Numbered from the stretch's first letter, positions 265 through 28,403 are shown. The stretch is DNA of 64,000 nt from Pocillopora damicornis (GCF_003704095.1 NW_020845867.1:930001-994000); one strand, 5' to 3'. The notes: a model not told the origin generated them from the sequence alone. Made by a program: numbers and translations.

Positions 265-3200
265 GTCCGCCACGCATCAATCTCGACAAGTCCTCGCCCT
301 CTAATCTGTATTCGTTCATTGGTAACCCTTCCCCAGTGACAATAAAGTGCCTATGGTGGGGATCTCCAGTTCCTGATATCCGCATAACAAAGGGTAATAA
401 AGAGTTACCGAGTGAAGAGGTACAATCTAATCCACCACGATTGGAGGCTACTGTAACTGTGAAAAATGATGAGGATTTTACAACCTACACATGTCACGCG
501 ACCAATGTGTACGGCTCAGCGTCTTATGACGTCGCCATCAATAAAGCCGGTAAGTGGTGTTGTCCAAAGGGATGGGAGGGTCAGGTTGGTTTGTCAATTT
601 AAGTTCCCTTCACGATAACTGTGTGAGAGTTTGAAAGTTTCATACCCAGCATGCAGTGAAGTGCTTTTCTGTTTGTTTTGTTTTGTTTGTTTTCTTTTCC
701 CTCGTTTGTTTGTTTGTTTTAACTCAATTTTAAATTTATGCTAGGAAAACCCAGTCCTCCGACAAACATCACGTTCGTTACCACATGTGATCACTTAACA
801 GTGGCCTGGAGAGAGCCGGAGTCTGATGGAGGTTTGCCACTGACGCATTACACCATAGAGCTAAAGGATGCCGGGAACTCGCTCGATGTCGTGTATATCG
901 GTGTACAAACTACAAGGTTTACCTTCACAAACCGCGAGGGCGTGAAACCGAGGACACTGTACAACGTTGCATTACAGGCTTTTAACCAACTTAATGACGG
1001 AAATAAAGGAGAGAACGATGTCGTGTCTGCTTACTGTGAGTGATATGGTGACATCTTCTTTTAAATCAAAACATGGAGCTACGCTTGTATTTTGATGTTA
1101 AGCCTAAATTTTGCAAATTTCGTTCCTTAAATCCGTTTTTATCTTCGCTATTCGTTAATAGTTCTCGACCGCTCATAGAGGATTTCAATGGGGTTAACCG
1201 ATAGCCGCAAAATGGCAAAAAAGTTTAGCCTTTAACCGTAAAAATTGAAAAATGCTTACAGTTAGTCGTAAAAAGTATTAACCATAAACAGTTTTGTTTA
1301 ATCGCAACAGAAAAAAAATTAACTGTTAGCCGTAAAATAGCCAAAATTTTGAACGATAGCCGAGAGAGCCATCAATCCATGGAGGCCCTCTTTTGAGTTT
1401 ATTATTACCTCTCAGTTTGGTGGTATTCTCTCTGACCGAAATAATTTTTTGAAGTCTCATTCGAGATGATGGTTTTTTAGTACCTCACATAAAATATCGA
1501 TCAACATGTAGAGAAGTAGTAGTCCTTTCGAAACGAGCCTGTAGAACAGGCGCCATTTTGTGAGCGGGTTCTGAGAAAGGTCTTCTCGAAAAAGAATATG
1601 AAAATTAACTAGAGATAAGGAACGACTGAGAAAACGAAAGAGTTGAGTTGTCAGAAGTCCCTTACTTTAAGCGAGACCACGCTGAAACACTAAGCGCATT
1701 GACCATTTTTCTCTTCTGTCACCACCAGGCCCTCCGAGCGGTTCCTTTAACATCACGAACACAGAGACGTGGTTAAACTCCACAAGTTTCATACTGAAAT
1801 GGACTCGCCCACTCCTGGACGGGGGTGATCCTATTCTGATTTACGACATTGAGTATAGCAAGGCTGACGCCGATGGAAAGTTTGTCCACTGGAATTCACG
1901 GAAGGGTATTGGTGCGCAAGAGTACAACGTGACAGGATTACAGGGAGGGTCTAGGTACGAGTTTAGGGTATTCGTGTCTAACATCGCTGGAAGGAAAAGA
2001 GAGCCCGCGAGGAAGGAATTTAATGTATACAGCGGTGTAGGAGGAGGACCCTCCCCAGGTAAAAACACATAAGGTTTGATCATAGTAAGTGCAGTTATAA
2101 GCTATTCATTTACAAGCCGACTGTATTGCGCAAAGGGCTTTCCTTGGCGATGACATTACGAAAATTAAGGTGGCTCTGAATAGCCCTATGGCGGACACAA
2201 GTTATCAACGGTTTACAGATAGGAAGGAAGGCTTGAAAAAAATGATGATTGGTGGGGGGGGATAAAGTTTTCAAGTTGTGTGACCTTTCCTGTTTTAAGT
2301 TTCAACACAAACAATTTTGTTCTACATAATCTCTTGTGTTTCTTTTTTTCTACGTTTGGTAAAAATTTTGGAACATCAGGCTAAGAAATTTTCCTGGGGG
2401 CTACTCGCAGTTAATATGCATCTGTCATAATCGTGTCTTTTTCCAGTTCCTGCTCATAGATGTTGTATTAGTATGTTTACAAAGCAAGACTTTCAGACTT
2501 AATCCTGACGTACCTAGCAACACCAGGTTTTTCCAGCGCAATAAAACTCTCACCCACAATCAACTCTTTTTTGTCTAAGAAATGCTGAATACGAGTTATC
2601 TATGCTACAACCGCGCGTTAATTATTTTGAACGAAGTTTTAGCCATAGCGGGGCTTTTCTAGGACATCACATACAGAGAGAAATGAAACAATTAAACTCC
2701 CGAAGTGAATTATAAAGATAAAAATATTAAGGAAACACATCTCCTAAACTGATACCGTCTGACTCTTTAATAAAATATTCATACACGGCATCCCTGTAAG
2801 GCATGTTAACTTGTAAAACAAGTTGTTAGCTTTGCGTAGTTAGTTTGTTTTATCCTTTCAAATAAGTGTTCGTTTTTACCTGAATGGAAACACCGTGTAA
2901 AAATTAAGTTTAACTATTATTACCAATACTGGAACTAATAGCTACCTTTAGTTTAGACTAAAACAGTGGATAGCGTCGAAGGCGCGCTCCGATTGGCTAT
3001 TCCAATTCCGAATATCCTTTGCTACGAGCAACTCGTGCGGGATTTGCGCCCGAAAATATTGTAATCGTTGCAGAATTGAATAAGTTAAAATCATCTTTTT
3101 GTGCTATATTATCTAACTGTTTTAGCATATTCTAAAACAACTTTTCACCTCAGTGTCGGCGGCTAGTAGTGGATATTTACCTCGCTGGTTCGCGGCTTAG

Positions 3201-6071
3201 TAAATATTAACGGCTAGCCACCTCCACTTCCGTGCATAAATGTTAATTATATATCGCTTTTCCTCCTCAAAGGTACAGGAACAGGAATACTACCCACTCA
3301 GCCAGTCCTAGTATACGACATCTCAGTCAACTGCACGTCATCTTACATGCAAGTCGACTTTGCCCTGAAATCTACTTATCTTGATGTCGAGACTTTCCGC
3401 TTTGAAAACAAATCCTGCGGTCCTCTCACCGTCAGCTCTACGCGTGTTTCCTTGAGAACACCGCTGGACGCCTGCGGGACCTCAAGTCGGCAGAGCGAGG
3501 AATCCATAACTTATTTCAACAAAGTCGTAGCACAAACCAAAGATCAGAAAACTGTGTACGTTGTCGAATTTCCGTTCTCTTGTACATACAACAGACAAGA
3601 TACAATCGGAACTCCAAGTTTTCAACCAAGAAAAAAGATCACCTTTTTTGAAGGTAAATTTTGTTATAAATTCGGGATCGGTGTGAGTATCTGAACCATC
3701 CCTTAAAACAAACAACATTCAACTGATATTAAGGTAGGGTTAATGTTGGGTTAGAGGAGGGGTTGGTGCGCAGTTTCTCATATACTGACATGGATCCTAA
3801 ATTTCTTTGTATTTTTGAGCCAAAGTGTGATCATGACGGAAATAGGAAATGTTATTTAGAGTTAAACATCCCTTGGCGAAAGCTACTGTAACACTTAAAT
3901 TCTGTAAACAAAAGAACGAAATTTCTCCTAAAATAAGAGTACAAATGTTTCAGGCGTAGTACTTTATCGTCATGATTATAATTTGTTCGTTCGCGCTCAC
4001 CCACATATCACTACCACACTCTTTTGATCACGCCTGTGTATCACGCACTCTCACTTAATCATTAATTTTGGAGTTGAACGTAAGCCCTTTTTGGAAGCAA
4101 AATGTCAGCAAAACAAAAGAAAAGAGGCCAATATAGAACTTAAGAGGTTATTTCCTCTATCTTCTTTTAGAGGGGTATGGTAACTTCTCACTTGAGATGG
4201 GTCTGTACCGAAGTGCCGAGTACTTGAAACCGTATGATGTATCAGAATACCCGGTGAACATCGACCCATTCGGTCAGTTGTACTGCCAGGCAAAATTGGA
4301 CACCTCGGACCCAGACCTCATCCTCCGTGCTGACATGTGCGTGGCCACACCCAGTATGGACCCATCACACAGCATACAGTACAAGTTTATCGACAACGGG
4401 CGAGTATTTTGTTAAATAGCATAGACGCAAGTGAAATATTGTTTGAAATTTTACTACACGTCTCGTTTAAGCATCATTGTCCTTTGTCATCAGCCACTTT
4501 TTTCTTGTTTACATAAGAGTATTCCTTTGAACTAAGAGGTGTTGCAGTAGTTCAAAATCATCTGGTCCTCATTTTTAAAGCTAGGCTTGCAGTAAAGTTG
4601 TCTATTATGATATACAGTGGGTATACAGAAGGACTATGCGGATATCAGTACATTAACTACGTCTTCAAACGTTGGAAGTAAGTAAGAAGGGTGATTGTGA
4701 GTGGGGGCTTCCGTCCCCCCTAATTAATTCTCCGAATTGTTATCAAGACACTTTTTTCCGCGAAAATTATCAGGCTGCGTAATTATCTTTTTTTTTTCTC
4801 TCACTCGACAGAGTAGGGCTATTAAAGAAAAAAAAGTAAATAAAATCAAACCGTTCCAGGACCATGCTTTTAATCCACACTATTGTTTTTGTCCTTTCCA
4901 GTTGCCCTATCGATAACGGGACAGATTACACCCACACTTTGACAGACACGCAGCGCTTTCAGCTTGTGCCGTTTCGTTGGATCGCAAATTACACTGTGGT
5001 TTATCTTCACTGTAATGTCATCGTCTGTCACAAGGAAGGAAATTCACGCTGCAGCAAAGGATGTCAGTCATCAGACCTTCGGCGCAAGAGGAGCACTGGG
5101 GACGAAGAGGAACACCGCATCACCCTCGGTCCTGTCATGCTCCGCAAACCTCTTCAATCACAGTCCTATAGGACGTTTGAAGGTAATTTTGCACTCAAAT
5201 TCTCCAAACTGTTCTCTTTGCGTTTCCAAAGGTACCGACAAGGAGAATTTGTCTGACAGTCGCGAGCATTTTAAATTGGTGATCATTTCCATTATCCTCG
5301 TGATCTTTGCATTTGATTCAAGGGTGTAACTGTAAGAAGAAAGTAGTAGTCAGTCTCCGTTTGGGGTAAAATGGATAACACTTGTTTTTATTTCTGCATT
5401 GTTTGCCCCTAACTTACTACTGGTAAAACATTGATTACGAGATTCACGAAATTGTTGAAAGGGATATGTTTACTGAGGCTTGTGGAGATCCACTCATTTA
5501 CGAAAAGAGTGGAGCATTAGGCTGCCGGAGTGTGTGGTCCTCTCTCAGCTTATCCAGCCTGTCCCAGGTATTCAGTTAGTAAAACGAAGCGCGATAGTAT
5601 ACGGTGCAGGAGTGAAAAAGGGAGGCTTGGGTTGGTTTGCGTTCTCCACGCGACCCGACCCGGCCCAGACTTCCCTCGTTTAAGTTTTGCCGACTGAAAG
5701 CCTGGAACAGGCTAAGCCTACTGCACTGACATGGTTGTGGTGCAAAATGTTCGGAGTAATCAGTTTATGAAAGTGGTCTAAGATTCGAGCATAGATTCAT
5801 TTACTCCACAATCCTCTCTTTAAAGCGTTCGTCCAGTAACACTTTCTTTATCTGGTCTGCAGATCCTGTACGTCAATCAACTAACGTTCGCAGCCTCCCT
5901 TTATGGGTAATAATTCTTGTTATTTGTGGGACAGTGGTCGGAGTTGGTTTGGTACTCATCGGCAGTGTACAGCTCTACTGCTTTGTGGCAGCAAAATCTC
6001 AAAATGGGGCAGCCGCTATCGGAGAGAGTCATTCAGAAGAGATAGAACTTTTCTGCTCCGAAAATGTTTAG
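265..6071 (+). CDS. Ig-FN3-FN3-ZP-TM cell-surface/matrix protein, NCAM-related ectodomain fused to a zona pellucida module (5' end lies upstream of the window)
   Basis: Exons 265-549 (Ig: IKC...FTTYTCHATNVYG), 745-1035 (FN3: W..PESDGGLPLTHY), 1729-2058 (FN3: LKWTRPLLDGG...YEFRV), 3273-3653 (ZP-N with 4 Cys: VNCT, KSCG, DACGT, FSCTY), 4171-4399 and 4902-5182 (ZP-C: DMCVATP, DNGCP, VYLHCNVIVC, then RRKRS furin site), 5863-6071 (TM LWVIILVICGTVVGVGLVLIGSV, short tail, TAG). All junctions keep the frame; one donor is GC. Confidence 0.9.
1178..1390. repeat. Short interspersed element with internal tagccg(t/c)aaaa repeats and imperfect terminal inverted repeats
   Basis: The motif (ga/gt)tagccg(t/c)aaaa recurs several times. 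The ends gaggatttcaatgg and ccatggaggccctc are imperfectly complementary. Confidence 0.5.
2958..3248. repeat. Interspersed repeat ending in a long imperfect palindrome
   Basis: Foldback ggctagtagtggatatttac ... gtaaatattaacggctagcc at about 3161-3220. It resembles an abundant coral repeat (from memory, not searched). Confidence 0.5.
5556..5713. mobile_element. Small MITE-like element
   Basis: Near-perfect terminal inverted repeats agcctgtcccagg / cctggaacaggct. Confidence 0.5.
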
Positions 6072-8513: not shown

Positions 8514-11500
8514 TCAGAGCAGAAGATACATCCCTCCTAGACAGATTGTAAGAAACGCTCTGGGCACGAGGCTTGATTGTGAAGATGTCTCTAAAAAAGA
8601 CAACAGTAGGGGAAAGTCAAAAAACTTACACATTCAATCCTTACTTCCTTGGTGGTACTTGGCTATCTACCATCTCATATCCAACGCGCACTTGTGGAAT
8701 AATTGTTAAAAGGTTGACGGTAAGAACCAATCAAAACGCGCGTAATGGCGCGCAAAACAGCTTATCATACAAATTAACACAGTTAACTGAGTTACATCTT
8801 ACCTTCAGGATAGTTTGTTTTGTAATACTTTATCACCTTCTCGCTTTCGCCCCCTTTATTGATGGCAACCAGGACAAATTTGTAAGTCTCTTTGTTATCC
8901 ATTTGACTGATTTTCGCCTCTTGTTTCTCGGTTTCTATCGTTTTCCAAGGTCCATCGCTTCCCTTCCTCTCAACACGGTACTCTAGTTTATATTTAATGT
9001 TACTGTCGCCTCCGTCGTCCTCAGGCCGCCGCCATTTTAATGTGAATTCGTCCTCCTCCAGAAGACTGCCCTTGGGCGAGTAGATGATTGGTCGACCCGG
9101 GGCACCTAAAGAATAGAGACAAAATGGCGGCGTTTTAAAACTGCGGTCGCACTACAGGGAAGAGAGGAGATCTCTTCTCGTAAGGTAAGGGTATTTTTTT
9201 TAATGTAATTAATTTCTAGGCGATGTGACTGTCATTGTTAGCCTTAAACAAGTGTTTAAATGAGAAAATGAAAAACTACCCCTTTGCCCAAGCCAAGAGC
9301 TGATCGAGTCAGTTTTGATCATCAGAATAAAATTTCACTATGTCGACGTTGACGTCGATGACATTAACCTCACAGACATTTTTATATTCCGTCAAGAAGT
9401 CTGTAATGACCAAATTCATCTTTAATGGTTTTCTCAAGTGCTTCTCTAACCTCGTTACTAGAGTGAATGCCCAAAACCAAAGGAAATATACAAAAGACAA
9501 ACGCAAGCACCAAGCAGTTGACCAAAACGATTTCGGTAAACAGAACATTTTTTGAGCGACAAAGGTCATGTGACCAAGAAAGGCGGGAAAACAAAAACAG
9601 GGAACCCAGCTAACAAAGTCAATAATTGACTTTACAAGAGCAGGACTCCAAGACCACTTATTTACCAAGCCTGATGAGCTGGACTTAGATCTTGACACTA
9701 TGTATTAACTACAACAGCACTCGCGCATGCTCTAATTGACCTTGACCGAGTTGACCCAGCTGGGCGCGTGGGCTAGCCAAAGTTTTTATTAAAAGAAAAG
9801 TTGACCCCGCTTGGACGGTGACACTATCGTCAAAAAAAGGGTGACCCAGCTAAGGTCTTGCTTGTGATCAATATTGTCTATTATGTTGTACTTGAAGCTG
9901 GTGCTCCTGGGGTTAAGTGGCTCTAACTCCTTTTCCCAGGAGGGGACCTCTTTGTTTTAGTTCATTGTTACATGATGTGACAGATTCTTACTTCACAGCT
10001 CTGATGAGCAGACAAAACCTTTTTGTTTGTGGGAGGTCAAAGAGCTACAGAGCAAATCCTTTTTATCATTGGTACTTCTGTTTATTATGTGACACAAGGT
10101 GTTGCTGACTTCCGGTCCATGAATGAAACTGTTTATGGTTCATGTAAAATGTATATGATGCCAACTTTTAAGTTTACAAAAGTGTGGATGAAACCCTAGC
10201 ATGTAATCATGCATATGAGAACTTGATGTAAAGGGAAGTTATATATTAATGTCATATTCTTATTAATCCTGCATGCAAGCTAATTTCAATTTTTAACCAT
10301 GAGTGTGACTAAATGTCTACAAAACCTTTTTGGAGAACATGCATATTGATGTTGGGGTGTAAAGGATTGACCAGAAGCAGCAAAATTTTGTAGGTTGTAG
10401 GTTTGTAGGGGTAACAATGATTGAATTTTACTTACAGAACTGGGTAGTCTTTGTTTCCACGACACTCATGTCTCCCCATTCTGCCTTGTTGGTAGCCCTC
10501 ACTTTGATACTGTAACGAGTGTTCCGTTCCAGGTTTCTAATCGTGTATGTTGTCGAATCACCATCAACGTTACGCGTCGTGGTTTCGTAATTCAAAACAT
10601 ATTTGTTGATAGGCATGCCACCATTTTCACTGGGCGCTTTCCAAGTAAGTTTGATACTATTGCAGGTGGGAACTGGTTTCAGACCTTGAACCTGACTTGG
10701 CTTTTCTGAAAAGCAAGACAAAAAGTTCCGATAAAGTTATTTTTACCAAACACCGCCTCCTTTTGTCTAGTGACTAGCATCCGATTTCTAATTACTCTTT
10801 ACACCCTAACATCAGTATGCAAATTCTCCATACTACTCCCTGGACATTTCCTAAGGTTCTGACAAGGAGAATTTGTTCAACAATCAAGGGCTTCTTTGGT
10901 TGGTGATCATTTCCTTTATTCTCATGACCTTAATGTTTGATTCAGCAGTAATGTTGTAAGGAGAAATTGGATGCTAATCACTCTTAGGGGTTAAGAGTTA
11001 ACAGTATCACCACTAGCACTGCATTGAACATTAAAGTCACAAGTATGAAAGAAATGACCAACAAATACAGAGCCTTAGGATTGTTAAACAATTTCTCCTT
11101 GGCCACACTACAAGAAAGTAGAAAGAACAGTAAGAGGAAATTGTATACTGATATTAGGATATGTTGGGTCAAGATCTAATAAGCGATTCATCTTTCATGC
11201 TGCTACAGAATTTCATCAAAAAAGTGGCTTATTCATAACAAAATTAACAAATTAGCTTGTTTCAAAAGGACTTTCCAAAATAACCTTCAGGGTGTACAAG
11301 CTACTTTTGTAAATTTCAGAGAAGTGACTCAGGTATACTGTCAGGAAATCCCTCTACAACAAGGTACAAATAAGTCATAAAGCCACACATTGCATACTAT
11401 ACTAACAAATCTCCTCAGTGACATTAAACAAAATTTCATACTTGCTGTTTCCATTGTCACAGTTCTATTTGTCCATCCAAACTTATTATGTGCATAACAC

Positions 11501-14500: not shown

Positions 14501-17500
14501 ATGTTTCCAAATTCACTCAACTCAACATTTTTGGGGGAGAACCACTTATACTTGGGAAGAGGGTAGCCTGTGGCCTCGCACAGGAAGGTGACAGGGTATC
14601 CCTCTGTTAAGTACTTCTTTGTTTGAGCAAATGGCTTGATCTTTGGAAGTTCTGGAAGACAAAAAAAGAACATAAGTTGCTTTATTTTTAAACTTAGACA
14701 ACTTTACCCCCAAGCAAACCACTCATGGAACACAAAAAGACGTGAGACCTCTTCCCCCTGCCTTTCACAAGGAGAAGCTGAGGAAAACATGGGTCTATAA
14801 CTGATGTAGATACAACTGGTTGAATGGTATTCCATGAAGCTAAGAACATCACAAAAGTTGAGCAAAAGAAGATTGATGATTTTCAATTTAGCGAATACTG
14901 TTCATTAAGTGGCTCTGCTTGCATTACCCATGAGGAAGTGAGCTCTCCAACACTTCCCTCATTGTAACAAAATGCATCATACTTTTAACATCATCTTAAA
15001 CACTAGGGCATCTATGAAAAGTTGTTATGTGTCAGGTTACATACCTACTGCATACACCTCAATTTTCACGTCATCCTCAGTACCGTCTTGCTCAATAGCA
15101 CAGGTATAATTCCCCCCGTCTGATTTTTCCACTTTACTTATTTTTAATGAGCCATCATCTTCAATTGAGTAGCGAGAGTTTACATTTGGACCAACTCTTT
15201 TTGAGCCTTTCTTCCAGGTAAAGATTGGTGTGGGGAAGCCAGTAACGCCAAGTCTTATAGTGCCTTCTTTATCTATTTGGATGTGCTGCACAGAGACAAC
15301 ATCTGATGTGTCAACTGAAATAAACAGAGGAATTTTTGGTCAATTTTGCACTGTTCTTTATTTAAGAGAAGACACAGGAAGCATTGTTAGTTGCAGTCAG
15401 TTTCATTGAGTCTCTTCAAGTCCAGTTGTTTTCTAGGTTGCCTATGGTTGTTGACTTGTTAGATAAACCTCTATACATTACCATCAGTATGAATATCTCC
15501 ATACCATTCTATTTACGTTCCCTATGATGCTGACAAGGAGAATTTGTTTCACAATCAAGAGCTGCTCTTAATCATTTCTTCTAATCCTGTGACCTGAATG
15601 TTTGATTCAGGGGTATAATATTGTACAGAGAAATTAGATGCTGGTCACTCTCAGAGGTCAAAATGCTTACAGGAATCAGTTCTAGCCATGACCTTAAACA
15701 AACTATCAAAGGTCTGTACCTGAAAAGAGTTATGAGGGTAAAAGATGGCTTCAAGAGGGTTTTATTAAAGGACTTATAGAGAATTTATAAAAAACTACTG
15801 CAGCAGTTTAAAACTGCTGTTTGAACTTGGAAGGTTTCCGTCCAAAATCCACAATATAAGCAGCAAATATTTGCTGCTTGGGCAGAAACTACACTGGCAA
15901 CATTGGTTATAAGCAAAGTAATGTGTAACTTACATTCAACATGCACTTTCAAAGATTTTGAATTTGTGGTTCCTTTACATGTATAAGTTCCCCCGTAGGA
16001 GACCTTGACATCTGTGAGTTTGAGCTTGTGGTTATTTCCATTAGTTTCCACAAAAATTTTTTCACTGGATGATGTGGGTACTTTTTTACCAGCTGGATCA
16101 AACCATCCTATAAATCTCTCACCATCTTTCACAGTACAAGTAACACTGTTTGTCTTTCCAGGCGAGGGTGTAATGAGTGTTTTTGAAAGAGTTACAGTAG
16201 CCACTATAAAAAAAAAAAGGTAAAAAAAAAGAAGAAAAGGTAAATAAGTACTTCAAAACAATCCATTTCGCTTGATATGACTTTCAAACATTGCTATGTA
16301 AATATCAAATTTGGTAGTCTGGGCCTACATCTAATTTACCAATATATCTTGCAAACAGGTAAGGAGAATAGACAACCTCATTGGTAAGAGGGTGCTATAT
16401 TGATCAAACACCAAATTCCCCAATCCAATTTGCAAGGAAATGTGTGACAGTCAGTAGGGCGAAATACTCCTATTATCTTGGGGCCCTAAGTGAATAGGGT
16501 GCACAGAGAGGAAAGAGGTATTTAAAACTAGAAACTCAGTTTCAAAAATATAAATTAAGTGACCCATTTCCTCCATGATCCAAGTGCTAAAAACAACTTC
16601 ACACAGACAAAAGTTAAAAGTTAGGATGAAGAACATAAAAAATTTGAAAATGCGTGCACTAAAACACGTAAAGATATGTCTAGTTACACTATGCACTGGA
16701 TGACAAGCTTTGACCTTAGAGAAAAATAGAACATGCAAACAGTTTCCTCTATGCTTGTTTATCATACTTCACATGTGATGAAAAACAGCTGAGATAAAAG
16801 ATTGATGGCTTCACGAATAACATACAATTTAGTTAAATTAAAACAATTTTTTTTAACTTAACGAACAATTCAATTAAAGATTCACTCCGTTTCTTCAAGG
16901 CATTGCCTCTCTAAGGAGTCTCTAACTAACGTCAGTAGGCAAGCTGTCTTTATTAAACGTAGAGTGGACTGAATCACAACATTAAAAACAAGAAGCCTTT
17001 TTCAAAATGTTTGTTACGTGATCCTTATCAGAGATGAAACGTGCAAAATCGCAGAGCTTTCCTAAAGGTCTCGTTATATCAGCTTAATTGACGTACACTG
17101 CCGTAAAACAGAACACGTATCAAGGGAGCTTAAAACATTTACAAATCCAGAGCCGATTGATTTGGCTCAATCCTGTCATAAATTATTCAACGAGGGAAAA
17201 TCGAGGGCAATTATGAACTGTCCTTTTTAGGAGAGATATGAAAACTGGTAATTATTTCTATAGGTACTGACTTTATAATTCACTGTCAGTTAAGCTAAAC
17301 GTTAAAATTTTTTATCCAACTATCTCAGAATTTACAAAAACCGGCAGATCTTTCGCGCGCAGGACGGCATTCAAGCTCTGCTTATAACAATAGATTTTGA
17401 GTGAAACAAAACAACTTCGAATCTCTCAAGTCACGTTCGATTCAAGCTAAAAGCCCACAGAGTAAATATTTAACCGAAATGCTTTCTTTTCAATAGAACG

Positions 17501-18851
17501 TAAACATACAGAGACGAAAAGAACTCAATTGGGAGATGGAAGCTTTTGAGAATGTAAACTTGTGGTTTATCGTAAAAATAACATGAAATAATTTGATGCT
17601 AAAGTAAGGTCTTGCTCGGTGAGTTGGTTAATTAGGGGTATTTCGTAGTAGGTGACATAAAAAGAGTAACACGTCACTCGGAAAATAGACTTCCTACATT
17701 TGTTACCTCTGAATATTTAGAATAATTTTTAGCTCAAAGGAAACCCTTTTCGTGAGTTTGATTATTTATGGATTTCTCTAAGTAGTTCATATCGGGCGCG
17801 TGATTCAGTTATGGAAGACATTTATGTTTACTCTTAACAATACGACGAAAGGAATACCGGTTACGCTCCCATAAATCTTCCATTTGCCTACCAAAAAGAA
17901 GGAAGAACCACTTATGAGCAGAGACCTCTATTCTGAATGTATTATGAACACTCCTGAAAATAAATAAAAGTTCTAACAAGGAATGTTGATGTTTAGTGAG
18001 AAATACTTGTAGCATGATAACACATCTCTCGTACGGCATCGGTCAAGGACGAAACGAGGTTAATGAAGATAAAGCCGACAGAAAACACAAAAGGATCCTA
18101 CAGAGTACATTGAAAATTTGAAACGAAAGAACAACGCAACTCCAGACTGACCACACTACATTGTGACATAACACGTTCTCGCTTTCAGCTTTCAACGTTT
18201 CTTCAACAATGTGACTTGAAGTCAATTTTGAACTCTTCGTGTATATCACACTGCAATCGACCAGATTTCTACTTCGCTAGTAAAATTTTAAATTTCTTGG
18301 CTCAGAGTTCTTTAAAATTAGAAAATACTAAACGACAGATCGTAGGTGACTGGAGGAAGAGAAGACGAGGAAGTGAAAGCACTGAATCTGTTCCTTCCAA
18401 AAAAAGCCACGCCGCTTGAAACTGAACATGGGGCGTTCACAAAAGCTATTTTGAGGTAGCTACGGATAAACCGTACTGTCTCTGCTTAAAGTTTCTTCTC
18501 TGCATGCCCGCAGCAAAAATTGAAGCCCTAAAAGTGAAAAATGAATAGGCCACGCGCGTCGAGATGCCTGAGAACAACACAAGAGATCTCCATTCGAATA
18601 AGCAACGTTTATCTCAACTGTCGCCCTATGACATGTACCTATGTGGCTGAACAAATTTCTCTCGTTTAGCCCCAAAAACATTTAAATTGAGTCTACTGGG
18701 CTAACTTTGAAAAAATATCTGAAGAGTTTAATAATTGCGCCAACAGAACATGACAATATCTCAGTATTCAAAATTATCAATGAACGTACTCACTTGATAG
18801 ACCGCAAAAGGACGCCATACCGGCGAACAGAAGAGCACACGCTCGCAACAT
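8514..18851 (-). CDS. NCAM/fasciclin-II-like adhesion molecule: signal peptide, 5 Ig, 2 FN3, predicted GPI-anchor signal (700 aa)
   Basis: Exons 18851-18794 (MLRACALLFAGMASFCGLS), 16203-15934 (Ig1), 15314-15045 (Ig2), 14651-14352 (Ig3), 12896-12754 plus 12359-12215 (Ig4), 11708-11442 (Ig5: FSYVGN...FGDYKCYAHNKFG, like NCAM Ig5 YTWEGN...FGNYNC), 10705-10436 (FN3: GGMPINKY), 9105-8803 (FN3), 8590-8514 (ETSSQSSLVPRAFLTICLGGMYLLL-stop). All introns are GT-AG and the 2103 nt total is one open frame. Confidence 0.9.
10792..11001 (+). mobile_element. Abundant ~200-bp MITE family (TTAA-CCCT...AGGG-TTAA type ends)
   Basis: Core ctgacaaggagaatttg...gatcatttcctttattctcatgacc...gtaaggagaaatt(a/g)gatgct is shared with at least 8 other copies in the window. 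Confidence 0.8.
12402..12595 (-). mobile_element. Same ~200-bp MITE family, reverse orientation
   Basis: Reverse complement of the core: aataaaggaaatgat...aaacaaattctccttgtc. Confidence 0.7.
13090..13335. mobile_element. Penelope-like element terminal fragment in inverted duplication, with hammerhead-ribozyme-like core
   Basis: Arms at about 13091-13162 and 13183-13272 are inverted copies. Each carries ctctga(tg/cc)aagggctaa(tg/ca)cttgaaacatc, which is a CUGANGA...GAAA core of the type known in Penelope-like elements. Confidence 0.65.
15463..15665 (+). mobile_element. Same ~200-bp MITE family
   Basis: catcagtatg...ctgacaaggagaatttg...gaaattagatgctggtcactct. Confidence 0.7.
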
Positions 18852-21000: not shown

Positions 21001-21352
21001 GGGAGTTTAAGAAAACCACGACGGCAACGGCAACGGGAACGTCCCTAAACAAAAGGTTTAATGAGCAGAACAATGGCTATGCATATGCGTCATAAATCTT
21101 TGTAAATTTCTTCGCGTCCTCAGCTTGAAATGACCAAACTTTGCGTTGTCTGGAGAACGTGAACGACGTAGGTTAATTTTTTCTGTTCCTCTTTCTAATT
21201 TAGCGCTGTGTTCCATATTCATTTTCGAGATAGTTTGACAAAGAGAAAAAAACTAAATGACTTTGAGTATTGCGAGATTCGTAGGTAAAATATAACTTCA
21301 TTTTTTAACCGACGTTGTCCACGGGGTCGCCGTCGTCGTTTCTTAACCTCCC
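21001..21352. mobile_element. MITE with terminal inverted repeats and target-site duplication
   Basis: Ends gggagtttaagaaa / tttcttaacctccc, with the direct repeat tagta on both flanks (20996-21000 and 21353-21357). Confidence 0.75.
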
Positions 21353-22824
21353 TAGTATCAAATATGATAATACCTCAGTTTCGTTCTGCATACACGTTTA
21401 TTTCTTATTTCAGTTTTCGCCTTGTTTTCGTTTTTCCGTGTCTCATTTTCAGCGCGACTTTGAAGGTAAATTTTGACTCAGAAATAGTATTTATTGCACA
21501 CCCAAGATGTTTTATAATTTACTTAAAAACATTTAAACAATTTGCGTGCGTTGAAAATCTCATTTTAGCACTAGCTTAACAATGTCCGGCTTCCCGATGC
21601 TCTTTGGTTTGGGGGGCTAATTCTATCGTCATTCAACTGAGTTTTGTACTTCGCTAAAATAGTGATTATCAAAACACCATATGTGGGCGAATAAAAGTTC
21701 ATTCAAGTTGACAAAGGTTCTATAATTGACTTTTGAAACTGAGTCGAATTTATTTATAGTAATTCACCGCACGTCCGTGTAGCCGCTGTGCTCGTAAAGA
21801 AACTTCAGAGCCGAATGGTACGACCGGAAACATCAGATCCCCCAACCGCACATTTCTTTTTCGGGGAGCGATCGTCTCAGGTTAGCGAAAGGCGATCGCT
21901 TCATAACTTTAATGATCCAATAGATGACAGAAAGAGGGGCTGGACACTTAATAACTTTGTTTTTCTCCTGTCTAACTTTCCCACACACGATGCAATAAAA
22001 CTTATGCAAGACACGTTCTTTCCTTTAACTGTATGCATTCGTTGAAATTTACCCAAAGTTATCTATTTTCGTCATCTGAAATCCGTGTTAAGCTTCTAAA
22101 TCTTTAAACGTTCCCATTCCGTTTATGGTTTTACGTTCCTAGTTTGGTATTCTTCGATCCTACCACACCAAAGTCGCTAGATTTATTTACGGTAAAGGAA
22201 TTAGCACAGCGCAAAAAAAAAAAACTCATATCAAATAACTTTCCGAGTTATCTTCCAATGTCAGCTCGTTTGAACACTGAGGCAGGTGTTTTCAAACGAT
22301 TTCTCAGATCATGATGCAAGAGCTTTAAAATTAAAACATGAACAACCAGCATCCTTTTTTTTGCAATAAAAACATGAAAGTCCATTGCTCAGATGACAAA
22401 AATATTTTAAAAGTTTATTTGTATAAATAATTTTCTAAGTGAACTGTGTAGTATTGCGTCATAAAAGCCAACTCTCATTTCTTGTCGATGTCCATGCATA
22501 TGCACTGAGTTTTACCTTCTAAATATAGCCGTGACATCAAAAGCTCCTTTAAAAACAACCGAAGAAAATACCACTTGTGAGAATAAATAATTTTCATGAA
22601 TTCTTTTGGCGAAATAATAACACAAAGAAGTTTATTAAGTAAAGAGAGGGACGCTCTCAACAAAACTTCACATTCATGGTAGCGACACTTCTGCTCAACC
22701 TCACTTTAATAGCAGAAAAAAATATGATGTCCGAGAGCAGTTTATTTGCTAAAATATCAAGAACTCGATTGCCACAATGAAAAAACCACAACGAGGAGAT
22801 ATCGTAGGAAAATTTCGATAGATC

Positions 22825-22920
22825 GATAGATCCCCTGGAGGGGAGGAGAGAGGTAAGGATAGATCCCTGGAGGGGAGGAGAGATGTAAGGATAGATCCCC
22901 TGGAGGGGAGGAGAGAGGGG
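22825..22920. repeat. Minisatellite, 3 copies of a ~33-bp unit
   Basis: gatagatcc(c)ctggaggggaggagaga(g/t)gtaag repeated three times, the last copy truncated. Confidence 0.85.
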
Positions 22921-24196
22921 AGAGCGGGTAAAGGCAGAATTCTCTGTGAAGGTGTGGCGCCTTGTTCTCCAAATTCTCATCCTATCAACGATCAAAGCGT
23001 GGAAGTCATTTTCAGCACCTGCATTTGGACCAAGCTTCTGAAGTTGATGCACTTGGTTTGCAAATCTATGTCCCTCGCGTGCTCACGATCTCTATCATAA
23101 TGGACTTAACAACAGGAAAGAGACATTTGTACTGAGAAAAAGAAAAACACAACTGATTTTATTGCACACCTTGAAAAAAGGTCTAGCGTATAGTGACAAT
23201 TTGAATAAATAAATTTCTAAATGAGCTATGGAATGCAACGAAAATGTTTGGTATAGGTAATTTTTCCATATCTGCATTAACCTCATTTCACTCTTAGGCG
23301 ATCATAACTAGAAATTGTTTTTGTATTGTTTTTGTTTTTTATATCAATTTTTTGTTATCTATTTCTTCATTTGTTTACTTTTCTTTGACAAAATAGCAAG
23401 GGGAGCTCATCGACGCAAGAGAGGTTCCCCTCTTATAACAGCAAAAATGTTAAATCAACTTTATAGAGCGACACAATGTCAACGTACATCCCATCAACCA
23501 ACATTTGAGAAAAGCTTCGTCTAAAAGTTTAACGCAAAGACATTGTAGGAGAATATTACCGATAACTTAATCCACTCCGCTTAACGAAAATTTTAATTAT
23601 CTTCTTAATTCCGAAAATGGAGTCCATCGCTATCTCTCTCGGCGTACGTTTTGTTACGTGAGACAGTCTTTGAAAGGGGCCACCACTCGCGAAAGCGAAA
23701 TTTTGGGAGAGAAATGGCATTGTTAGTTAAATTACTCTGACTTTTCAGTGGCTCTAGGAGAGAAAGGGATGAGAAATACCCCAAGTTAAGGCACTCGTAT
23801 CCAGGTTTCTCACCGTTTCCCTCGTCTGTTCATCACTATGGGGTAGGTTATATGCTGAAAAATATAAACCTTAATTAAAAGGACTAGGGAAATTTTAACA
23901 TAAATTAAATTTTGTATTTCTGTCTGTCTCTCTAGAAATTTCCCTATTTTTAGAGATTTAATCTAGTACCAGCCCAGTGCTAAGAATCCTAATCTTCCTG
24001 AGCGATTTTCTATGTTTGGACCATTATTCGTCGTTGATCTCAAAATGTACGCCACACAAAAAACGCAAGTACTGAATCTTGTTGATGCTCTCGTTAACTT
24101 TTCCCAGTAGTCTCGACAGTTTTATTCAAGCGTGTTTGGTGCGCCAAATATCTCTGACCATAGTGACAGTACCAGTACCGGGGCAACAATCCATAC

Positions 24197-27100
24197 TCAA
24201 AGCACCAGGTGAACGAACGTCGACATTATCAGAAGCGTAAGAATCGAAGTTACAACTTTTAACTCGCTGCCTGAAGATCCACGTTTTTCAGGACCTAAGA
24301 AAGAAGAGAAAATTGGCTTGGATAAAGTTTTTAACAGTTTGCTTACCTGCTAACGGTTAAGATTGCAGGTCCCTTGTCAAAATTTTTATCTCTTCCTTCC
24401 TCCAACAATTCCTTTTCGCAGCCGTTCTTGGGATGTCAAGAAACGCGTAGAACGTCTTCAAAGGCATCACCTCTTGGCGAAGGAAAATGTCGTCCGAACC
24501 AATTCCCGAAGAGTGGTGCTCTACGATTTTATTTCAGTCATAGCTTATTGCAGCAATACCAATAAAAAGAACCTATTTCGCAAGTCAACCAACCCTGAGC
24601 TTTGCTCATTAAGGAAATTATATTTGTCTCAGTAAAGACCGTGGTTTGCTCGAAAATATGCAAAGCCTCGCAAAACGTAGCTTCCTGGAACGGAGGCAAT
24701 TTCAGATACCGATCAGAATAAACGTAAACAAAATGATAAATCAATGCAACGAGAGCTAAACACAGATCGCTGGTGGCCGAGGCTTTTACACAATCAGTCA
24801 TTATTTATCGCTTTGCAGGGGTGAAGGGGGGTGGAAGATATTGGGGTCGATGACATGGTTTCAGCTGAAACCGAGGGAGAACCAGTCGTTGCCTAAAGGC
24901 TATAAAAGGGGACCATGGGAAATTGACCACTAATGAGGAAGGGGGGAGGGATGGGGATCATGAGAATATTGCAGAGCCTTATGGGGGACACGTGACATAA
25001 CCAAACTCCTTCGAACCCCACCCCACTGGCGATAAATAATGACCGATCCCTAATTCGAACAGGCCTTGGATATGCCACGTATTTCCTTACATGCAACAGT
25101 AGTATTGAGAGAAATACTTCTCCACTCTCCACCGCCAAGTGCATTGTTAGAATTCAATCGAACCTCGTATTCAGTTTTCTTTTTAAGATTTGTAAAGCTC
25201 TTGGAGCGACTTAAATTTGTTAAAGATTCCGATGCAACTGATTCGCCTCCATTCAAAAGTTTGACGGTGTAGCCTGTCACGGGGCTTCCGCCATCCTTGA
25301 GAGACGCCTCCCACGTGACCTCTACACTGTCACACGTCGATGAAGCTTGCACGTTATTTGGAGGCTCAGGAGGACCTGGAACGGAAAGATAGCAAATGCC
25401 CCACTTTTAGAATGCGACTTCCCTTAGCAAGCAAAATGAAGCAAAACAATTTCACTTGAAAACATATGCATTTTGATGCGTTTGTGTCTACCGTCTATCG
25501 TCCACTCTGAAAACCTAAAAATGCAGATGCAGGCGAAAATACATGACGCCTTTTCTTCTCAAAATTTTCAAAGCCTCCGTTTTCATTTCTCTACGAAGCC
25601 TTAAATAGAAGTGTGTATCTAAAACACTCTACTTTTGAAACAAAGGTTTGAAAAATTTCAGTTAAACTTTTTTCAAGCTGCGCAAACTGTAAAGTGATAT
25701 CCTTTGATGTCAACAAGTGAAATCGAGGCAAAACTGGCGGCAAAACAGGCGGCAGTTCGGTCCCCGTTTTCTTTTTTCTTTTTTCTTTTTAAGAATTTAA
25801 ACTCACCTCTTTCGTAAACCTCAATGTAATGTGTTACTGTACCCATCTTATTTTCAGCCACACAGCTGTAAAATCCAAAGTCCCTTGGTTTTGTAACACG
25901 AAACTTGTAGGAAACAAACCCGGATGCGTTGGAAATGCTATTCAAATTAACACCAGCGAATTGGAACTTTAATTCGGGAACTGGAAATCCATCAAATTTA
26001 CATTTCAGTGTTATTTCCTTATTACTGTCTAATGATGAAAATATCGTTCCGTGCGTGGAGCTTTCACTGATCAAAACGGGGCTATCTGCAAACAAAAAAA
26101 GAGGGCTATCATTAGGTTTGATACTCGATTAATGTAATCTCACTGGTGTCCCTGGTGTCCCTCGTCTAGACTACAACACTCTTTGATTGGTCTATAATAA
26201 TCGCCCCATACTCTCTCAGTCATTCATTCAGACTTGTTCACCTGCGTTTTGCGACACTTCTGTCCAGGCGCTTTACATTTGCACGGAGAAAGAAAGCAAT
26301 GACTTATCATCTGGAAAAGGTATACTTTTTGAGGTATTCCTCCTTTCTTTCTCTTACCGAATGCAATTACTTGTAGCGCTTGCGCACGTTCCGCCATGAA
26401 AAACACAGTATTGCAGATTTCCGCCGTTTTTTTTCGGTTGAATGAGCGCATGCTCATTTTCCGAGCGCCCAAGAGACCCAAGAGCATAAATGGGTACTAG
26501 TAAATAGGTAAATAGTAAGGAAAACCTTACTAAATTCACCTGCGATAGACTGGCATATCTTCCGGGGTAGAGGTGAGTCACAGTACTCCTTCCCGCTCTA
26601 TTCAACGGAAACGAAACGGGATAAGCTCCATCAGCATGGGCTTTTAAATCATTGTCCCTTGAGCTGACTGACCCTTAAAGATCTAAGTCAAGATCAATCG
26701 CAGGGAGCATGGGTCCTAGATTACATTTAAGTCGTTACTTCGTCCCTCTACCCTCATAATACTTACATTCGACATTCAGCCGGATTTGCGTCTTGTTCCT
26801 AGTCCCTCTACATTCGTAGGTTCCTCGGTCTGCCTTGTTGACCCTAGGGATCTCTAAGTACTTCAAACTTCCACTTGATCTTACGTGGACTCTTGCTGAC
26901 GGGTCATTAGTTATCTTCTTTCCGCTGGATGTAAACCAACCTGTAAGAGCCTCGTCTGTCGCAGAACAATTTATACTTAATTCGCCACCCTCGGGTATGG
27001 TATAATTCCCTTTGGGAACATGGACAGTGCCATCTGAAGACGAGGAAAATAACTTTTAATTTTAAGAATCAATAACTTTTTTGTTGTGTGAGGCTCAGAA

Positions 27101-28403
27101 AAGCACTTTGTAATCCTAAGTAGTATTGCTCACAAGGTTTCAAATGTTGGACAAAAAATCACGTAAAATAGTTGTTTTTACTGCGGTAATTTAGTTCTCT
27201 ACCCACAAAGACTGCGGGCGTTTCAAGGACGTCTCGCGATTGAGGCTCAGAGTTCATCTTCTGGAGAGAGACAGGAAGCCTAAACAATAAGGGTTCGCCT
27301 GGGAAGTAACTTATCAGGTGATGAGTGACAAAGATTAATCGCGCTGTTTTTTCTGTGTCCGGTTGAAATGCCATGCATTAGCATGCCATCTGAGGCGTAA
27401 TCGACAGACGAGCGTTTGCTGGTGTGTTAAGCGGTTAGGTTCACTGGGCTGCAGTTTTCAGTTTAAAATCAAACACAATACTAGCAGCCGTTTATCGTTG
27501 CTTTAAACACTCATGCAAAATTGAGCGCAAGCACCACTCGCGTTGGCTTACGCCCCCTCCAGGTAGGCTACATGCCTAACCTTTGCTCCTTCTCAGATGT
27601 GATACGTGATTGTTGATGTACACGAATGACGCTTCAAGACCGTAGCTTGTACCAACGAATCATGTGACAAGAGCTCTTTCCGAGTGGTTTCCGACGCGGA
27701 TCTGATGTTAGATTTTGTGTCGTGGTTAGACTACGATCAGCCTCTCTTTTGCAGCTTCACGTGCGAGTGTAAAGAAATCCACAAAACCTTAACCTCCTCG
27801 CCCCTTCGCGTGGAGCTTACTTATATTCTTCAGTCATTCTTTAGACTCGGGCAAGGGACGAAAGAAAAAAAGACGGATTGATCGTAGACAAATGAACAAA
27901 TGTCAAATGGAACTAGGCGTAGGTGAAGTTTCAATTATTGCGTGACATACTTTGTCCCGGCCTACCCTTCAATAATGAATTGCATCCTTTAGTTCGAATC
28001 CATTGGGCCAAGATCATATGCCAAAATAATCTGACTGAACTTGTTTTGAGCGAAGTCGCATTTTTAATCAATATTTTGAAACAAAATGACAACATTTCCC
28101 TCCACTGATCAAGTCTTGCATTTCATCTGTGTATTTCATCAGTACAAGAGAAAAACTGAGTTCTTGAACTATTTTCAAACGCATTAATTTCCTTTCTTAA
28201 TCTCAGCTAATCGGGGTAGCTTTAAGCTTACAAACCACGAGAAAAAGGGACTTAAACACAGCGAAACATTCTCGCAAGGCATTTGTCAATATTTTAAAAA
28301 ATTTATAACCAAAACATCCGTCAAACTTACCACAAATGGATGTCCATTGCAGCGAAATCAACTGAACTAGTGCCACTAATATTTTGAACAGGATCTCAGT
28401 CAT
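24197..28403 (-). CDS. Short NCAM-like paralogue: signal peptide, 2 Ig, 1 FN3, predicted GPI-anchor signal (333 aa)
   Basis: Exons 28403-28331 (MTEILFKILVALVQLISLQWTSIC), 27033-26767 (Ig: INC...GWFTSSGKK...GTYECRG), 26085-25807 (Ig: LKC...DFGFYSCVAENKMG), 25375-25091 (FN3), 24294-24197 (CPEKRGSSGSELKVVTSILTLLIMSTFVHLVL-stop). All introns are phase-1 GT-AG; 1002 nt in frame. Confidence 0.88.
24790..25053 (+). mobile_element. G-rich interspersed repeat (second copy at ~31880-32117)
   Basis: Both copies share cagtca(t/g)...atttatc, gga...cag...gtcg, attgac, gtgaca(t/c)aaccaaa and tgac(c/t)ga(t/c)ccct. Confidence 0.55.
26480..26642 (+). mobile_element. 3' fragment of the tRNA-derived SINE also found at 47229-47511
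   Basis: ataaatgggtact...gatagactggcat...aaacgggataagct matches the distal part of the longer copy. Confidence 0.5.

Follow-up and report, generated by a model that had tools for sequence, protein, structure and literature searches.

Three real IgSF genes lie at positions 265-28403 of the window (the 64,000 nucleotides of Pocillopora damicornis DNA analysed here), A on the plus strand and B and C on the minus strand, as judged by Pfam matches on exon-sized open frames and by splice-site analysis. We think it probable that they are members of an old family of NCAM-type IgSF surface glycoproteins, shaped by duplication, by exon loss and, in gene A, by the gain of a ZP module. Built from AG/GT-bounded exons, the spliced models stay open throughout. 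Gene A is predicted to encode SP-Ig-Ig-Ig-FN3-FN3-ZP-furin site-TM (889 aa) and gene B a signal peptide, five Ig domains, two FN3 domains and a short hydrophobic GPI-type tail (700 aa); gene C has the order SP-Ig-Ig-FN3 followed by a GPI-type tail (333 aa). An earlier note on this DNA had described the same architectures for B and C, and these stand, with GPI-type ends as predicted from sequence, while gene A proved fuller than it had proposed, with three Ig domains and a signal-peptide exon upstream. The note had also placed nearly all domains on phase-1/phase-1 exons. This is what we find for A, B and C, with two exceptions: a phase-0 intron within Ig4 of gene B and a phase-2 GC-AG intron within the ZP-C of gene A. 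Support from RNA joints is confined to gene C, and the chains of A and B were read from genomic sequence and orthologous exons.

Exon structure and paralogy

Pfam detected seven Ig-type frames (Ig4 in two pieces) and two fn3 frames for gene B, spanning 16252 to 8795 on the minus strand. The signal-peptide exon (18794..18851, minus strand; 19 aa plus one base, donor GTGAGT) was located by a sequence scan; a 74% identical exon occupies the matching place in ERZ25067556, and ERZ25071792 contains a 19-aa counterpart with the same CAA/GT donor context. Ig1 (15934..16203) is NCAM Ig1-like and matches Pfam I-set, Ig2 (15045..15314) matches I-set with 45.8 bits and Ig3 (14352..14651) matches Ig_3 with 41.3 bits, all three exons being phase 1/1. 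Ig4 is split into a first half that enters in phase 1 and leaves in phase 0 (12754..12896; N-terminal half of Pfam Ig_3) and a second half that enters in phase 0 and leaves in phase 1 (12215..12359; C-terminal half of Pfam Ig), and this split recurs in genes D and E of the family and in the orthologues of gene B. The remaining domain exons are again phase 1/1: Ig5, the last Ig (11442..11708), which carries the F-G-x-Y-x-C-x-A-x-N motif, has a weak Pfam Ig_3 match and was recovered in the own-genome search; FN3-1 (10436..10705; Pfam fn3, 54.7 bits); and FN3-2 (8803..9105; Pfam fn3, 31.6 bits). Ig1, Ig2, Ig3, the last Ig and FN3-2 of gene B each fall in the clade of their position (supports below). 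A sequence scan predicts the last coding exon at 8514..8590, with a 25-aa tail made up of a Ser-rich stretch, a 14-residue hydrophobic end and a stop; a 26-aa look-alike is present in ERZ25071792.

Gene C, also on the minus strand, is transcribed and spliced as modelled. Its Pfam frames are Ig at 26738-27055, Ig at 25676-26128 and fn3 at 25053-25406. The first coding exon (28331..28413, ATG at 28403) encodes a 24-aa signal peptide, and a 5'UTR exon joins it at about 28413, where the RNA contigs have loose ends at 28407-28413. Three phase-1/1 domain exons follow: Ig1 (26767..27033; Pfam Ig_3/I-set; Ig1 clade); a second Ig homologous to the family last Ig (25807..26085; Pfam Ig_3/I-set; last-Ig clade); and an FN3 of the FN3-1 type (25091..25375; Pfam fn3, 51.6 bits). 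RNA, the check that the earlier note had proposed for the exon chains, bears this chain out, with the joints 28331 to 27033, 26767 to 26085 and 25807 to 25375 seen in contigs from four runs of four studies, so that both Ig exons are joined on both sides. The junction 25091 to 24294 is carried as well, in contigs that continue past the FN3 exon with 14 letters identical to 24265-24278, and RNA contigs begin exactly at 24294 and run colinear down past 23300. The last exon (23300..24294) encodes a 32-aa tail, 53% identical in ERZ25067556, with its stop at 24198-24196 and a 3'UTR extending below 23300. Relative to a plan of five Ig and two FN3 domains, gene C lacks Ig2-4 and FN2 and has Ig1, the last Ig and FN3-1.

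The tails of B and C resemble one another, with small residues, a spacer and a hydrophobic end of 14 residues in B and 19 in C, and with no cytoplasmic residues. A search downstream of gene B FN2 for a conserved TM or cytoplasmic exon found none. Because the tails are short and hydrophobic without a cytoplasmic part, and because no conserved TM exon follows FN2 in gene B, the predicted ends of both genes fit fixed GPI forms.

In domain trees, the domains of the five paralogues group by position, with clade supports of 100/99 for Ig1, 98/95 for Ig2, 94/92 for Ig3, 81/93 for the last Ig and 91/85 for FN2, and the 13 best non-family Ig domains of the genome all fall outside the Ig positional clades. 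Since the domains cluster by position and the next-best Ig domains of the genome are excluded, genes A, B and C are true paralogues, which differ in the whole phase-1 domain exons that they have lost and in the ZP-TM module that A has gained. Identity among the genes is low (23-33%, except 39% for Ig1 of A versus B). In the last Ig and FN3-1 it reaches only 23-29% in pairwise comparisons of A, B and C, and the last-Ig profile matches thousands of Ig proteins, as might be expected if these were unrelated IgSF genes, neighbours by chance, alike in their generic Ig/FN3 fold. That reading is almost certainly wrong. It is contradicted by the positional clades and by an exon structure common to the genes, down to the phase-0 intron that divides Ig4 in B, D and E. 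It is also at odds with the T-C-[ND] motif, which is present in all five family FN3-1 domains, and with own-genome searches, in which each family domain hit the same loci every time. The FN3-1 domains are not cleanly monophyletic in the domain tree.

True paralogy of A, B and C agrees with the earlier note, which had claimed three neighbouring paralogues with a homologous core of last Ig and FN3-1; the motifs that it quoted for this core are present in the sequence. The core needs one correction, in that Ig1 is also common to all three genes. The note had further argued that the variants are fixed as separate duplicated genes. Paralogy and the GPI-type ends agree with this, but the set is larger than three: this genome contains at least five family genes, of which four lie within 58 kb on the same contig. 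The fourth is gene E, a five-Ig, two-FN3 gene 23 kb upstream, and an own-genome search placed a fifth paralogue on a different contig.

The ZP module of gene A

Gene A, on the plus strand, begins outside the window. Its signal-peptide, Ig1 and Ig2 exons (L003:6626-6713, 8297-8578 and 9324-9617, equivalent to C2502:926626-929617) lie within the 3.4 kb before it, and inside the window its Pfam frames are Ig at 243-599, fn3 at 723-1040 and 1686-2069, ZP-N at 3218-3691 and ZP-C at 4137-4412 and 4840-5253. The third and last Ig exon (265..549, phase 1/1) is supported by Pfam Ig_2/Ig_3/I-set matches, splice sites, its place in the last-Ig clade and an orthologous exon in four other assemblies. FN3-1 (745..1035, phase 1/1; Pfam fn3, 38.2 bits) carries the family T-C-[ND] motif, and FN3-2 (1729..2058, phase 1/1; Pfam fn3, 48.5 bits) falls in the FN2 clade. 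Measured against the five-Ig, two-FN3 plan, gene A lacks Ig3-4 and has Ig1, Ig2, the last Ig and both FN3 domains.

The ZP-N exon (3273..3653, phase 1/1) scores 42.6 bits against a Pfam cut-off of 24.7, and orthologous exon ORFs in 26 clusters match it at 55-100% identity. Two exons encode ZP-C, for which the Pfam cut-off is 24.6 bits: the first (4171..4399; 55.3 bits) ends in phase 2, and the second (4902..5182; 34.4 bits) contains an RRKR furin-type site and the external hydrophobic patch. The three ZP exons hold 4, 2 and 5 Cys, respectively. By translation and the open model, the last exon (5863..6071) encodes a transmembrane helix, a cytoplasmic tail of about 30 aa without Tyr, and a stop; an orthologous exon is present in three other assemblies.

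The join of FN3-2 to ZP-N is predicted from genomic sequence, and the first ZP-C exon ends at a GC donor (gcgagt at 4400, context GG/GCGAGT) where two gene A orthologues have GT. Both points could be taken to mean that gene A is a modelling artefact, in which a head-to-tail Ig-FN3 gene and a separate ZP-TM gene have been fused on paper, or that it is a gene decaying through a GT-to-GC donor change. We consider this very unlikely. Beyond the signal peptide, all nine coding exons follow one another in colinear order with compatible phases and stay open for the full length of the model, and the same intact exon chain is found in four other assemblies at 46-91% identity. A signal-peptide-like exon, as a separate ZP gene would have, was sought between FN3-2 and ZP-N, in the 1.2 kb before the ZP part, and none was found. 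As to decay, dN/dS is 0.04-0.18 and the donor matches the GC-AG introns, a known minor class.

The single gene A model has the sequence features of a ZP module, namely a ZP-N with four conserved Cys, a ZP-C, a basic cleavage site, a hydrophobic patch and a TM helix. Searched against PDB, its ZP-C best matched uromodulin (E=1.1e-6), in an alignment that covers the Cys pattern, the cleavage site and the LGP patch; the HMMER alignment places RRKR in the same stretch as the RFRS of uromodulin and aligns the L-G-P patch. The C-terminal half of gene A thus has the order of uromodulin/GP2-type proteins: ZP-N with four Cys, ZP-C, cleavage site, patch and anchor. By contrast, its N-terminal arm is built from NCAM-type domains, three Ig and two FN3, where uromodulin has EGF domains, and its anchor is a TM helix rather than GPI; polymerisation of gene A is putative. 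Among anthozoans, the ZP domain-containing skeletal matrix protein of Acropora has a ZP, an R-X-K/R-R site and a TM helix, and shedding of its ectodomain into the matrix has been proposed (PMC3748352, PMC4890752). Compared by description, gene A is like it in having a ZP followed by a basic site and a TM helix, but the Ig and FN3 domains of gene A are absent from the descriptions of that protein (PMC3748352, PMC4890752). The literature that we searched held no description of an Ig-FN3-ZP fusion.

NCAM kinship, conservation and selection

The earlier note had recognised five Ig plus two FN3 as the NCAM/fasciclin II architecture. This ectodomain is present in genes B and E and not in A (three Ig, two FN3 and ZP) or C (two Ig and one FN3). 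A profile of the five family Ig1 domains, searched against PDB, found its best match in NCAM2 Ig1-3 (3.1e-25; best stretch, residues 7-84), with NCAM1 at 5.7e-18 (best stretch 7-82) and NCAM2 Ig1 alone at 41.4 bits. On these profile matches, the family Ig1 is specifically NCAM-like. NCAM2 FN3-1 was among the PDB matches of the family FN3-1, while the last-Ig profile found generic I-set domains, with no NCAM chain in the top 60 matches.

Vertebrate NCAM1 and NCAM2 and insect fasciclin II have the same five Ig, two FN3 and membrane anchor as genes B and E, in which the anchor is putative. NCAM Ig1-Ig2 mediate homophilic binding. Bilaterian NCAM and fasciclin II produce GPI forms (NCAM-120 and FasII are known examples) and TM forms by alternative splicing of one gene, whereas gene B has a GPI-type end only. 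Further differences are that A and C lack internal Ig domains and that the family last Ig is not specifically NCAM-like in PDB. Closer to corals, NCAM1 and NCAM2 of Nematostella vectensis have five Ig and two FN3 domains and are described as transmembrane, and NCAM2 localises to apical junctions and is required for epithelial organisation (PMC12745706). Likened by description, their domain plan is that of genes B and E, although gene B has a GPI-type tail; they are the likeliest functional counterparts of B and E. Since NCAM-type proteins organise sea anemone epithelia (PMC12745706), it is reasonable to consider similar roles for the coral paralogues.

Gene B lies convergent beside A in two of the four other assemblies that have the gene A chain, and C lies upstream of B in one, so that a comparison of gene order, suggested in the earlier note, recovers A-B adjacency twice and A-B-C once, at a dS of about 0.8; in one assembly, gene A is followed by a NACHT gene instead of B. 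Exon dN/dS is 0.04-0.52, which indicates purifying selection. Identity among the paralogues is low compared with the 53-91% to orthologues in other corals, and A, B and C are therefore ancient genes, each separately conserved.

The earlier note had raised self/non-self recognition as a possible function, and the cluster might then be a coral system comparable to the Alr complex of Hydractinia, whose members are likewise clustered cnidarian IgSF genes with Ig domains followed by an Fn3-like fold. Our genes are clustered and have membrane-distal Ig domains, Ig1 is the least conserved domain of gene C (62.5% versus 79.6% for its FN3), and 8 of the 13 listed gene C exon differences in RNA contigs alter an amino acid. 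However, dN/dS over the whole Ig1 exon, a check that the note had suggested, is 0.16 in A, 0.29 in B and 0.29 in C, all purifying. The gene C exons in RNA contigs from four studies differ by about 1-2% from the window, with 0-3 differences listed per 267-nt Ig1 exon, a blunt measure from four RNA runs and not a population sample. The first domains differ as well: domain 1 of Hydractinia Alr is an atypical V-set, often without the Cys pair and Trp (PMC9546547), whereas in A-E the Ig1 domain retains the canonical Cys-Trp-Cys core, with its invariant Cys, Trp and Y-x-C, and scores as I-set/Ig_3 and NCAM Ig1, with V-set only a weak secondary match below cut-off. Alr proteins are highly variable single-pass TM receptors, often with ITAM or ITIM tails (PMC9546547), but B and C have no cytoplasmic part, the tail of A has no Tyr, and none of the three shows an ITAM/ITIM tail or high variability. 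An allorecognition role for the cluster is unsupported, and we regard it as highly improbable.

Proposed origin and function

We propose that duplication of a gene with the five-Ig, two-FN3 plan gave rise to every member. Nearly every domain of that gene would have occupied one symmetrical phase-1 exon, an arrangement in which the reading frame survives the loss or addition of whole domains. Gene B would have kept the full NCAM/fasciclin II ectodomain and ended in a tail typical of a GPI-anchor signal. Gene C would have retained just Ig1, the last Ig and FN3-1, with a tail of the same kind. Gene A would have retained Ig1, Ig2, the last Ig and both FN3 domains, and gained a uromodulin-type ZP module followed by RRKR, the hydrophobic patch and the TM helix. 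The B and C proteins may be lipid-anchored adhesion or recognition molecules on epithelial or neural cell surfaces. The gene A protein may be a membrane-tethered precursor that, once cut at RRKR, would use its ZP module to polymerise, giving extracellular filaments that bear NCAM-like arms.

The products could conceivably form one working system, in which cleaved gene A filaments display NCAM-like Ig1-Ig2 arms that GPI-anchored B and C (and E) bind from cells. Such binding would tie epithelium to extracellular matrix, calicoblastic cells and the skeletal organic matrix being one example. The gene order retained in other assemblies at such a dS, and the homologous NCAM-like Ig1 common to all members, with its precedent in homophilic NCAM binding, could point in this direction. 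Both furin-site ZP-TM proteins and proteins of a neural-adhesion type also occur in coral skeleton proteomes (PMC3748352; PMC4890752; bioRxiv 2026.03.24.713908). However, these proteins are not identified with genes A, B and C, old tandem duplicates require no functional cause to remain neighbours, and the NACHT gene, not B, follows A in one assembly. A joint function of A, B and C is unsupported, and we consider the system unlikely. Slightly less likely still is its extension to corals, perhaps to other anthozoans, as matrix-to-cell adhesion derived from one duplicated gene, in which a ZP-backbone filament with NCAM-type Ig1-Ig2 arms (A) would meet GPI-anchored B, C and E as cell-surface partners, possibly at the interface of calicoblastic epithelium and skeleton.

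The locus shows clearly, and in conserved form, how domains are shuffled by way of symmetrical phase-1 exons: one ancestral NCAM-type gene gave rise to a full-length form and a minimal form, both with predicted GPI anchors, and to a form fused to a ZP module of the filament-forming type. At least five coral assemblies retain the Ig-FN3-ZP fusion, and do so under strong purifying selection. Should the gene A product polymerise, it would make a new kind of filament for the apical or skeletal matrix, one that carries its own adhesion domains, and such a filament would bear on how coral epithelium attaches to its matrix.

Exon structure and domain content of the three genes

The earlier note had placed Ig, FN3 and ZP domains in three neighbouring genes, and its domain observation proved real: exon-sized stop-to-stop frames bear Pfam domains at those places on both strands, the exons are bounded by splice sites, and the spliced models are open. 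Gene A (plus strand) has an Ig frame at 243-599, fn3 frames at 723-1040 and 1686-2069, a ZP-N frame at 3218-3691 and a ZP-C frame in two pieces (4137-4412 and 4840-5253), after which comes a frame with a transmembrane (TM) helix at 5760-6068. The minus strand carries gene B, with seven frames of Ig type and two of fn3 between 16252 and 8795, and gene C, with two of Ig and one of fn3 between 27055 and 25053. Exact exons were obtained by splice-site analysis, and reading is open through the spliced models of gene A (889 aa), gene B (700 aa) and gene C (333 aa). Exons were joined only for this open-frame check, for SNP classification and for per-exon dN/dS; they were searched one by one. Every domain exon is phase 1 in and out, with two exceptions: gene B Ig4, interrupted by a phase-0 intron (12754|12359), and gene A ZP-C, interrupted by a phase-2 intron.

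The phase-2 intron has a GC donor (gcgagt at 4400; GG|GCGAGT, 4400-4401). Two orthologues carry GT in place of GC at exactly the same phase-2 position, indicating that the intron is of GC-AG type and its site conserved. From its sequence, the GC donor could belong to a GC-AG intron that works or represent a splice site that has been weakened.

The 5' end of gene A lies in the 10 kb upstream of the window, where stretch L003 contains, on the plus strand, a signal-peptide-like first exon (L003:6626-6713), an Ig1 exon (L003:8297-8578) and an Ig2 exon (L003:9324-9617). No signal-peptide-like exon was found between FN3-2 and ZP-N. With the upstream exons, gene A therefore reads SP-Ig-Ig-Ig-FN3-FN3-ZP-N-ZP-C-RRKR-TM.

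The first coding exon of gene B (18851-18794, minus strand; 19 aa) is 74% identical in another species, and a scan of its last exon (8590-8514, minus strand) revealed a 25-aa tail in which a Ser-rich stretch precedes 14 terminal hydrophobic residues. A distant gene B orthologue has a 26-aa look-alike tail after FN3-2, and tblastx against the orthologous interval gave nothing significant for TM or cytoplasmic exons past FN3-2. Gene C starts with an ATG at 28403, and its 32-aa tail, which begins at 24294, closes with 19 hydrophobic residues. Both ends resemble GPI-anchor signals, and we predict such an anchor for the two proteins.

RNA contigs from four runs in four studies were aligned to 23300-29200, which covers gene C only; the runs containing the window stretch carry labels of coral or marine metatranscriptomes. 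The joints 28331|27033, 26767|26085 and 25807|25375 were all present in the contigs, with GT..AG borders on the minus strand. Contigs of the FN3 exon end in 14 loose letters identical to 24265-24278, while others begin exactly at 24294. An exon end and donor at 25075 was rejected: the alignment overran the FN3 exon by 16 letters into an intron stretch that happens to resemble the start of the last exon, and with 4 mismatches the fit of these letters to the intron is a chance one. The loose letters and the overrun together place the junction at 25091|24294, as modelled. A 5'UTR exon joins at about 28413, and the last exon is colinear in the contigs to below 23300, giving a 3'UTR of >0.9 kb. Unspliced contigs were also found, at lower depth. 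Among the modelled exon chains, that of gene C has RNA support from these runs, the read check being confined to this gene. Within the intron between its FN3 and last exons, many high-depth RNA contigs start or end at 24950-24990, carrying loose, unrelated ends to either side; the pattern resembles that of a short dispersed repeat with expression elsewhere.

In the rest of the window, frames at 38550-38957, 49851-50207 and 62455-63453, judged by eye only, resemble delta-COP (archain), a DEAD-box helicase core and a hormone-sensitive-lipase-like protein, respectively, in agreement with the earlier note.

A five-member family with positional domain homology

Whole-genome searches of the coral's own assembly (234,350,878 bases, 4393 contigs; the window is C2502:930001-994000) found the same few loci with each domain: genes A, B and C and two further members, E and D. 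Gene E (C2502:900258-907463, L006:258-7463, minus strand) lies 23 kb before the window and has Ig1, Ig2, Ig3, a split Ig4, Ig5, FN3-1 and FN3-2, with the exon structure of gene B; a GPI-type or TM exon was sought within 6-8 kb and not found. The 19 kb between genes E and A contain two assembly gaps (306 N in L003 and 347 N in L004) and a reverse-transcriptase-like fragment with a weak RVT_1 match (L003:4411-5306). Gene D, on the minus strand of contig C2891 at about 66-80 kb (L008:824-9608, L007:6212-8931; own-genome matches at about 70.8-79.6 kb), has eight Ig domains, the Ig3-Ig4-Ig5 block being duplicated, and one FN3 (FN3-1). It is the closest relative of gene B in the genome, at 33-39% identity. 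Downstream of gene D, on the same strand, three or four ORFs, each roughly 190 aa long, match the 3-keto-disaccharide hydrolase (jelly-roll) family weakly and below cut-off; they may be another swapped C-terminal module, as a candidate only. Upstream of gene D lies a mucin-like open frame of 460 aa with a high content of Thr, Ser, Glu and Pro (L009:1339-2718, C2891:81339-82718, minus strand).

Pairwise identity among genes A, B and C is 25-29% in the last Ig (the one nearest FN3-1), 23-25% in FN3-1 and 33-39% in Ig1. The five paralogues, orthologues in other species and the genome's 13 best non-family Ig domains supplied 42 Ig domains for a maximum-likelihood tree; trees were made per domain only, with exons not concatenated. 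The domains grouped by position: Ig1 (100/99), Ig2 (98/95), Ig3 including the gene D duplicate (94/92) and the last Ig (81/93), with all 13 outgroup domains outside these groups. FN3-2 also formed a group (91/85), and FN3-1 grouped less cleanly. By these positional groups, Ig3 and Ig4 are missing from gene A, and Ig2-Ig4 and FN3-2 from gene C, in support of the whole-exon loss that the earlier note proposed.

A lone conserved Cys in a domain is unusual for FN3. All five FN3-1 domains (747-1034 in gene A, 10437-10703 in gene B, 25092-25373 in gene C, L008:857-1123 in gene D and L006:1611-1895 in gene E) share a T-C-[ND] motif, whose single conserved Cys near the domain start has no partner Cys inside FN3-1. 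This residue may form an interdomain or intermolecular disulfide.

A profile of the three last-Ig exons, run against 1.84 billion representatives, matched only giant multi-Ig proteins, in which the scores of many Ig domains are summed, and was uninformative on family members.

Conservation of the locus in other assemblies

Twenty-six sequence clusters contain orthologues of the gene A ZP-N exon; identity is 55-100% overall and 62-100% over the aligned exon. This exon-frame word search returned only exon-sized ORFs from genome or Logan contigs and no full-length or spliced proteins, as candidates were limited to 0.55-1.75x the query length. We compared the flanks in four other assemblies (ERZ25071792, ERZ26692694, ERZ25067556 and ERZ25067862; ENA). 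The full colinear chain Ig1-Ig2-Ig3-FN3-FN3-ZP-N-ZP-C-ZP-C of gene A was present in all four at 46-91% identity, and its TM exon in three (45-60%). In ERZ25071792 and ERZ25067556, a convergent gene B orthologue (five Ig domains, Ig4 again split, and two FN3) directly follows gene A, as it does in the window. Upstream of gene B, and on its strand, ERZ25067556 also has an orthologue of gene C reading Ig-Ig-FN3-tail, with domain exons 62-80% and tail 53% identical; the A-B-C arrangement is accordingly older than the divergence of these two genomes. In ERZ25067862, a NACHT gene (847-aa ORF, L033:15603-18146) follows gene A, in the place taken by the gene B orthologue in the other species.

Against ERZ25067556, dN/dS (Nei-Gojobori) was 0.04-0.18 for the ectodomain exons of gene A, 0.19-0.48 for gene B and 0.16-0.29 for gene C, with dS about 0.5-1.5, indicating purifying selection on all three genes. 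Taken together, these data give good support to the proposed structure and evolution of the locus.

Relatives and putative function

Among solved structures, the closest to a profile of the five Ig1 domains were NCAM2 and NCAM1, which were matched best in their own Ig1. The FN3-1 profile matched titin, Dscam and NCAM2 FN3-1, and the last Ig appeared as a generic I-set domain in a search of solved structures. Five Ig and two FN3 domains make up the NCAM/FasII architecture, shared by NCAM1 and NCAM2 of Nematostella, where NCAM2 is required for epithelial organisation (PMC12745706). The gene A ZP-C exon was closest to uromodulin (E=1.1e-6), in an alignment that extends over its Cys pattern, cleavage site and external hydrophobic patch. 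Coral skeleton matrix contains anthozoan ZP-TM proteins with an R-X-K/R-R site (PMC3748352, PMC4890752), and neural-adhesion-type proteins have been reported from it as well (bioRxiv 2026.03.24.713908); both are likened to the genes here by description only. A literature search turned up no account of an Ig-FN3-ZP architecture from cnidarians.

The earlier note had raised self/non-self recognition, citing Hydractinia. The Alr proteins of that animal are highly variable TM receptors whose first domain is an atypical V-set and which often bear ITAM/ITIM tails (PMC9546547). By contrast, Ig1 here keeps a canonical Cys-Trp-Cys core, a cytoplasmic part is absent from genes B and C, and the gene A tail has no Tyr. 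Moreover, Ig1 dN/dS is 0.16-0.29 in genes A, B and C, and RNA contigs from the four studies differ from the window at few positions per gene C exon (13 listed differences, 8 non-synonymous and 5 synonymous). In these blunt tests, nothing points to a recognition system.

Judged by homology, the family would comprise lipid-anchored adhesion molecules and one cleavable, filament-forming relative; that genes A, B and C act jointly is speculative. The interest of the locus lies mainly in its conserved NCAM-ZP fusion.
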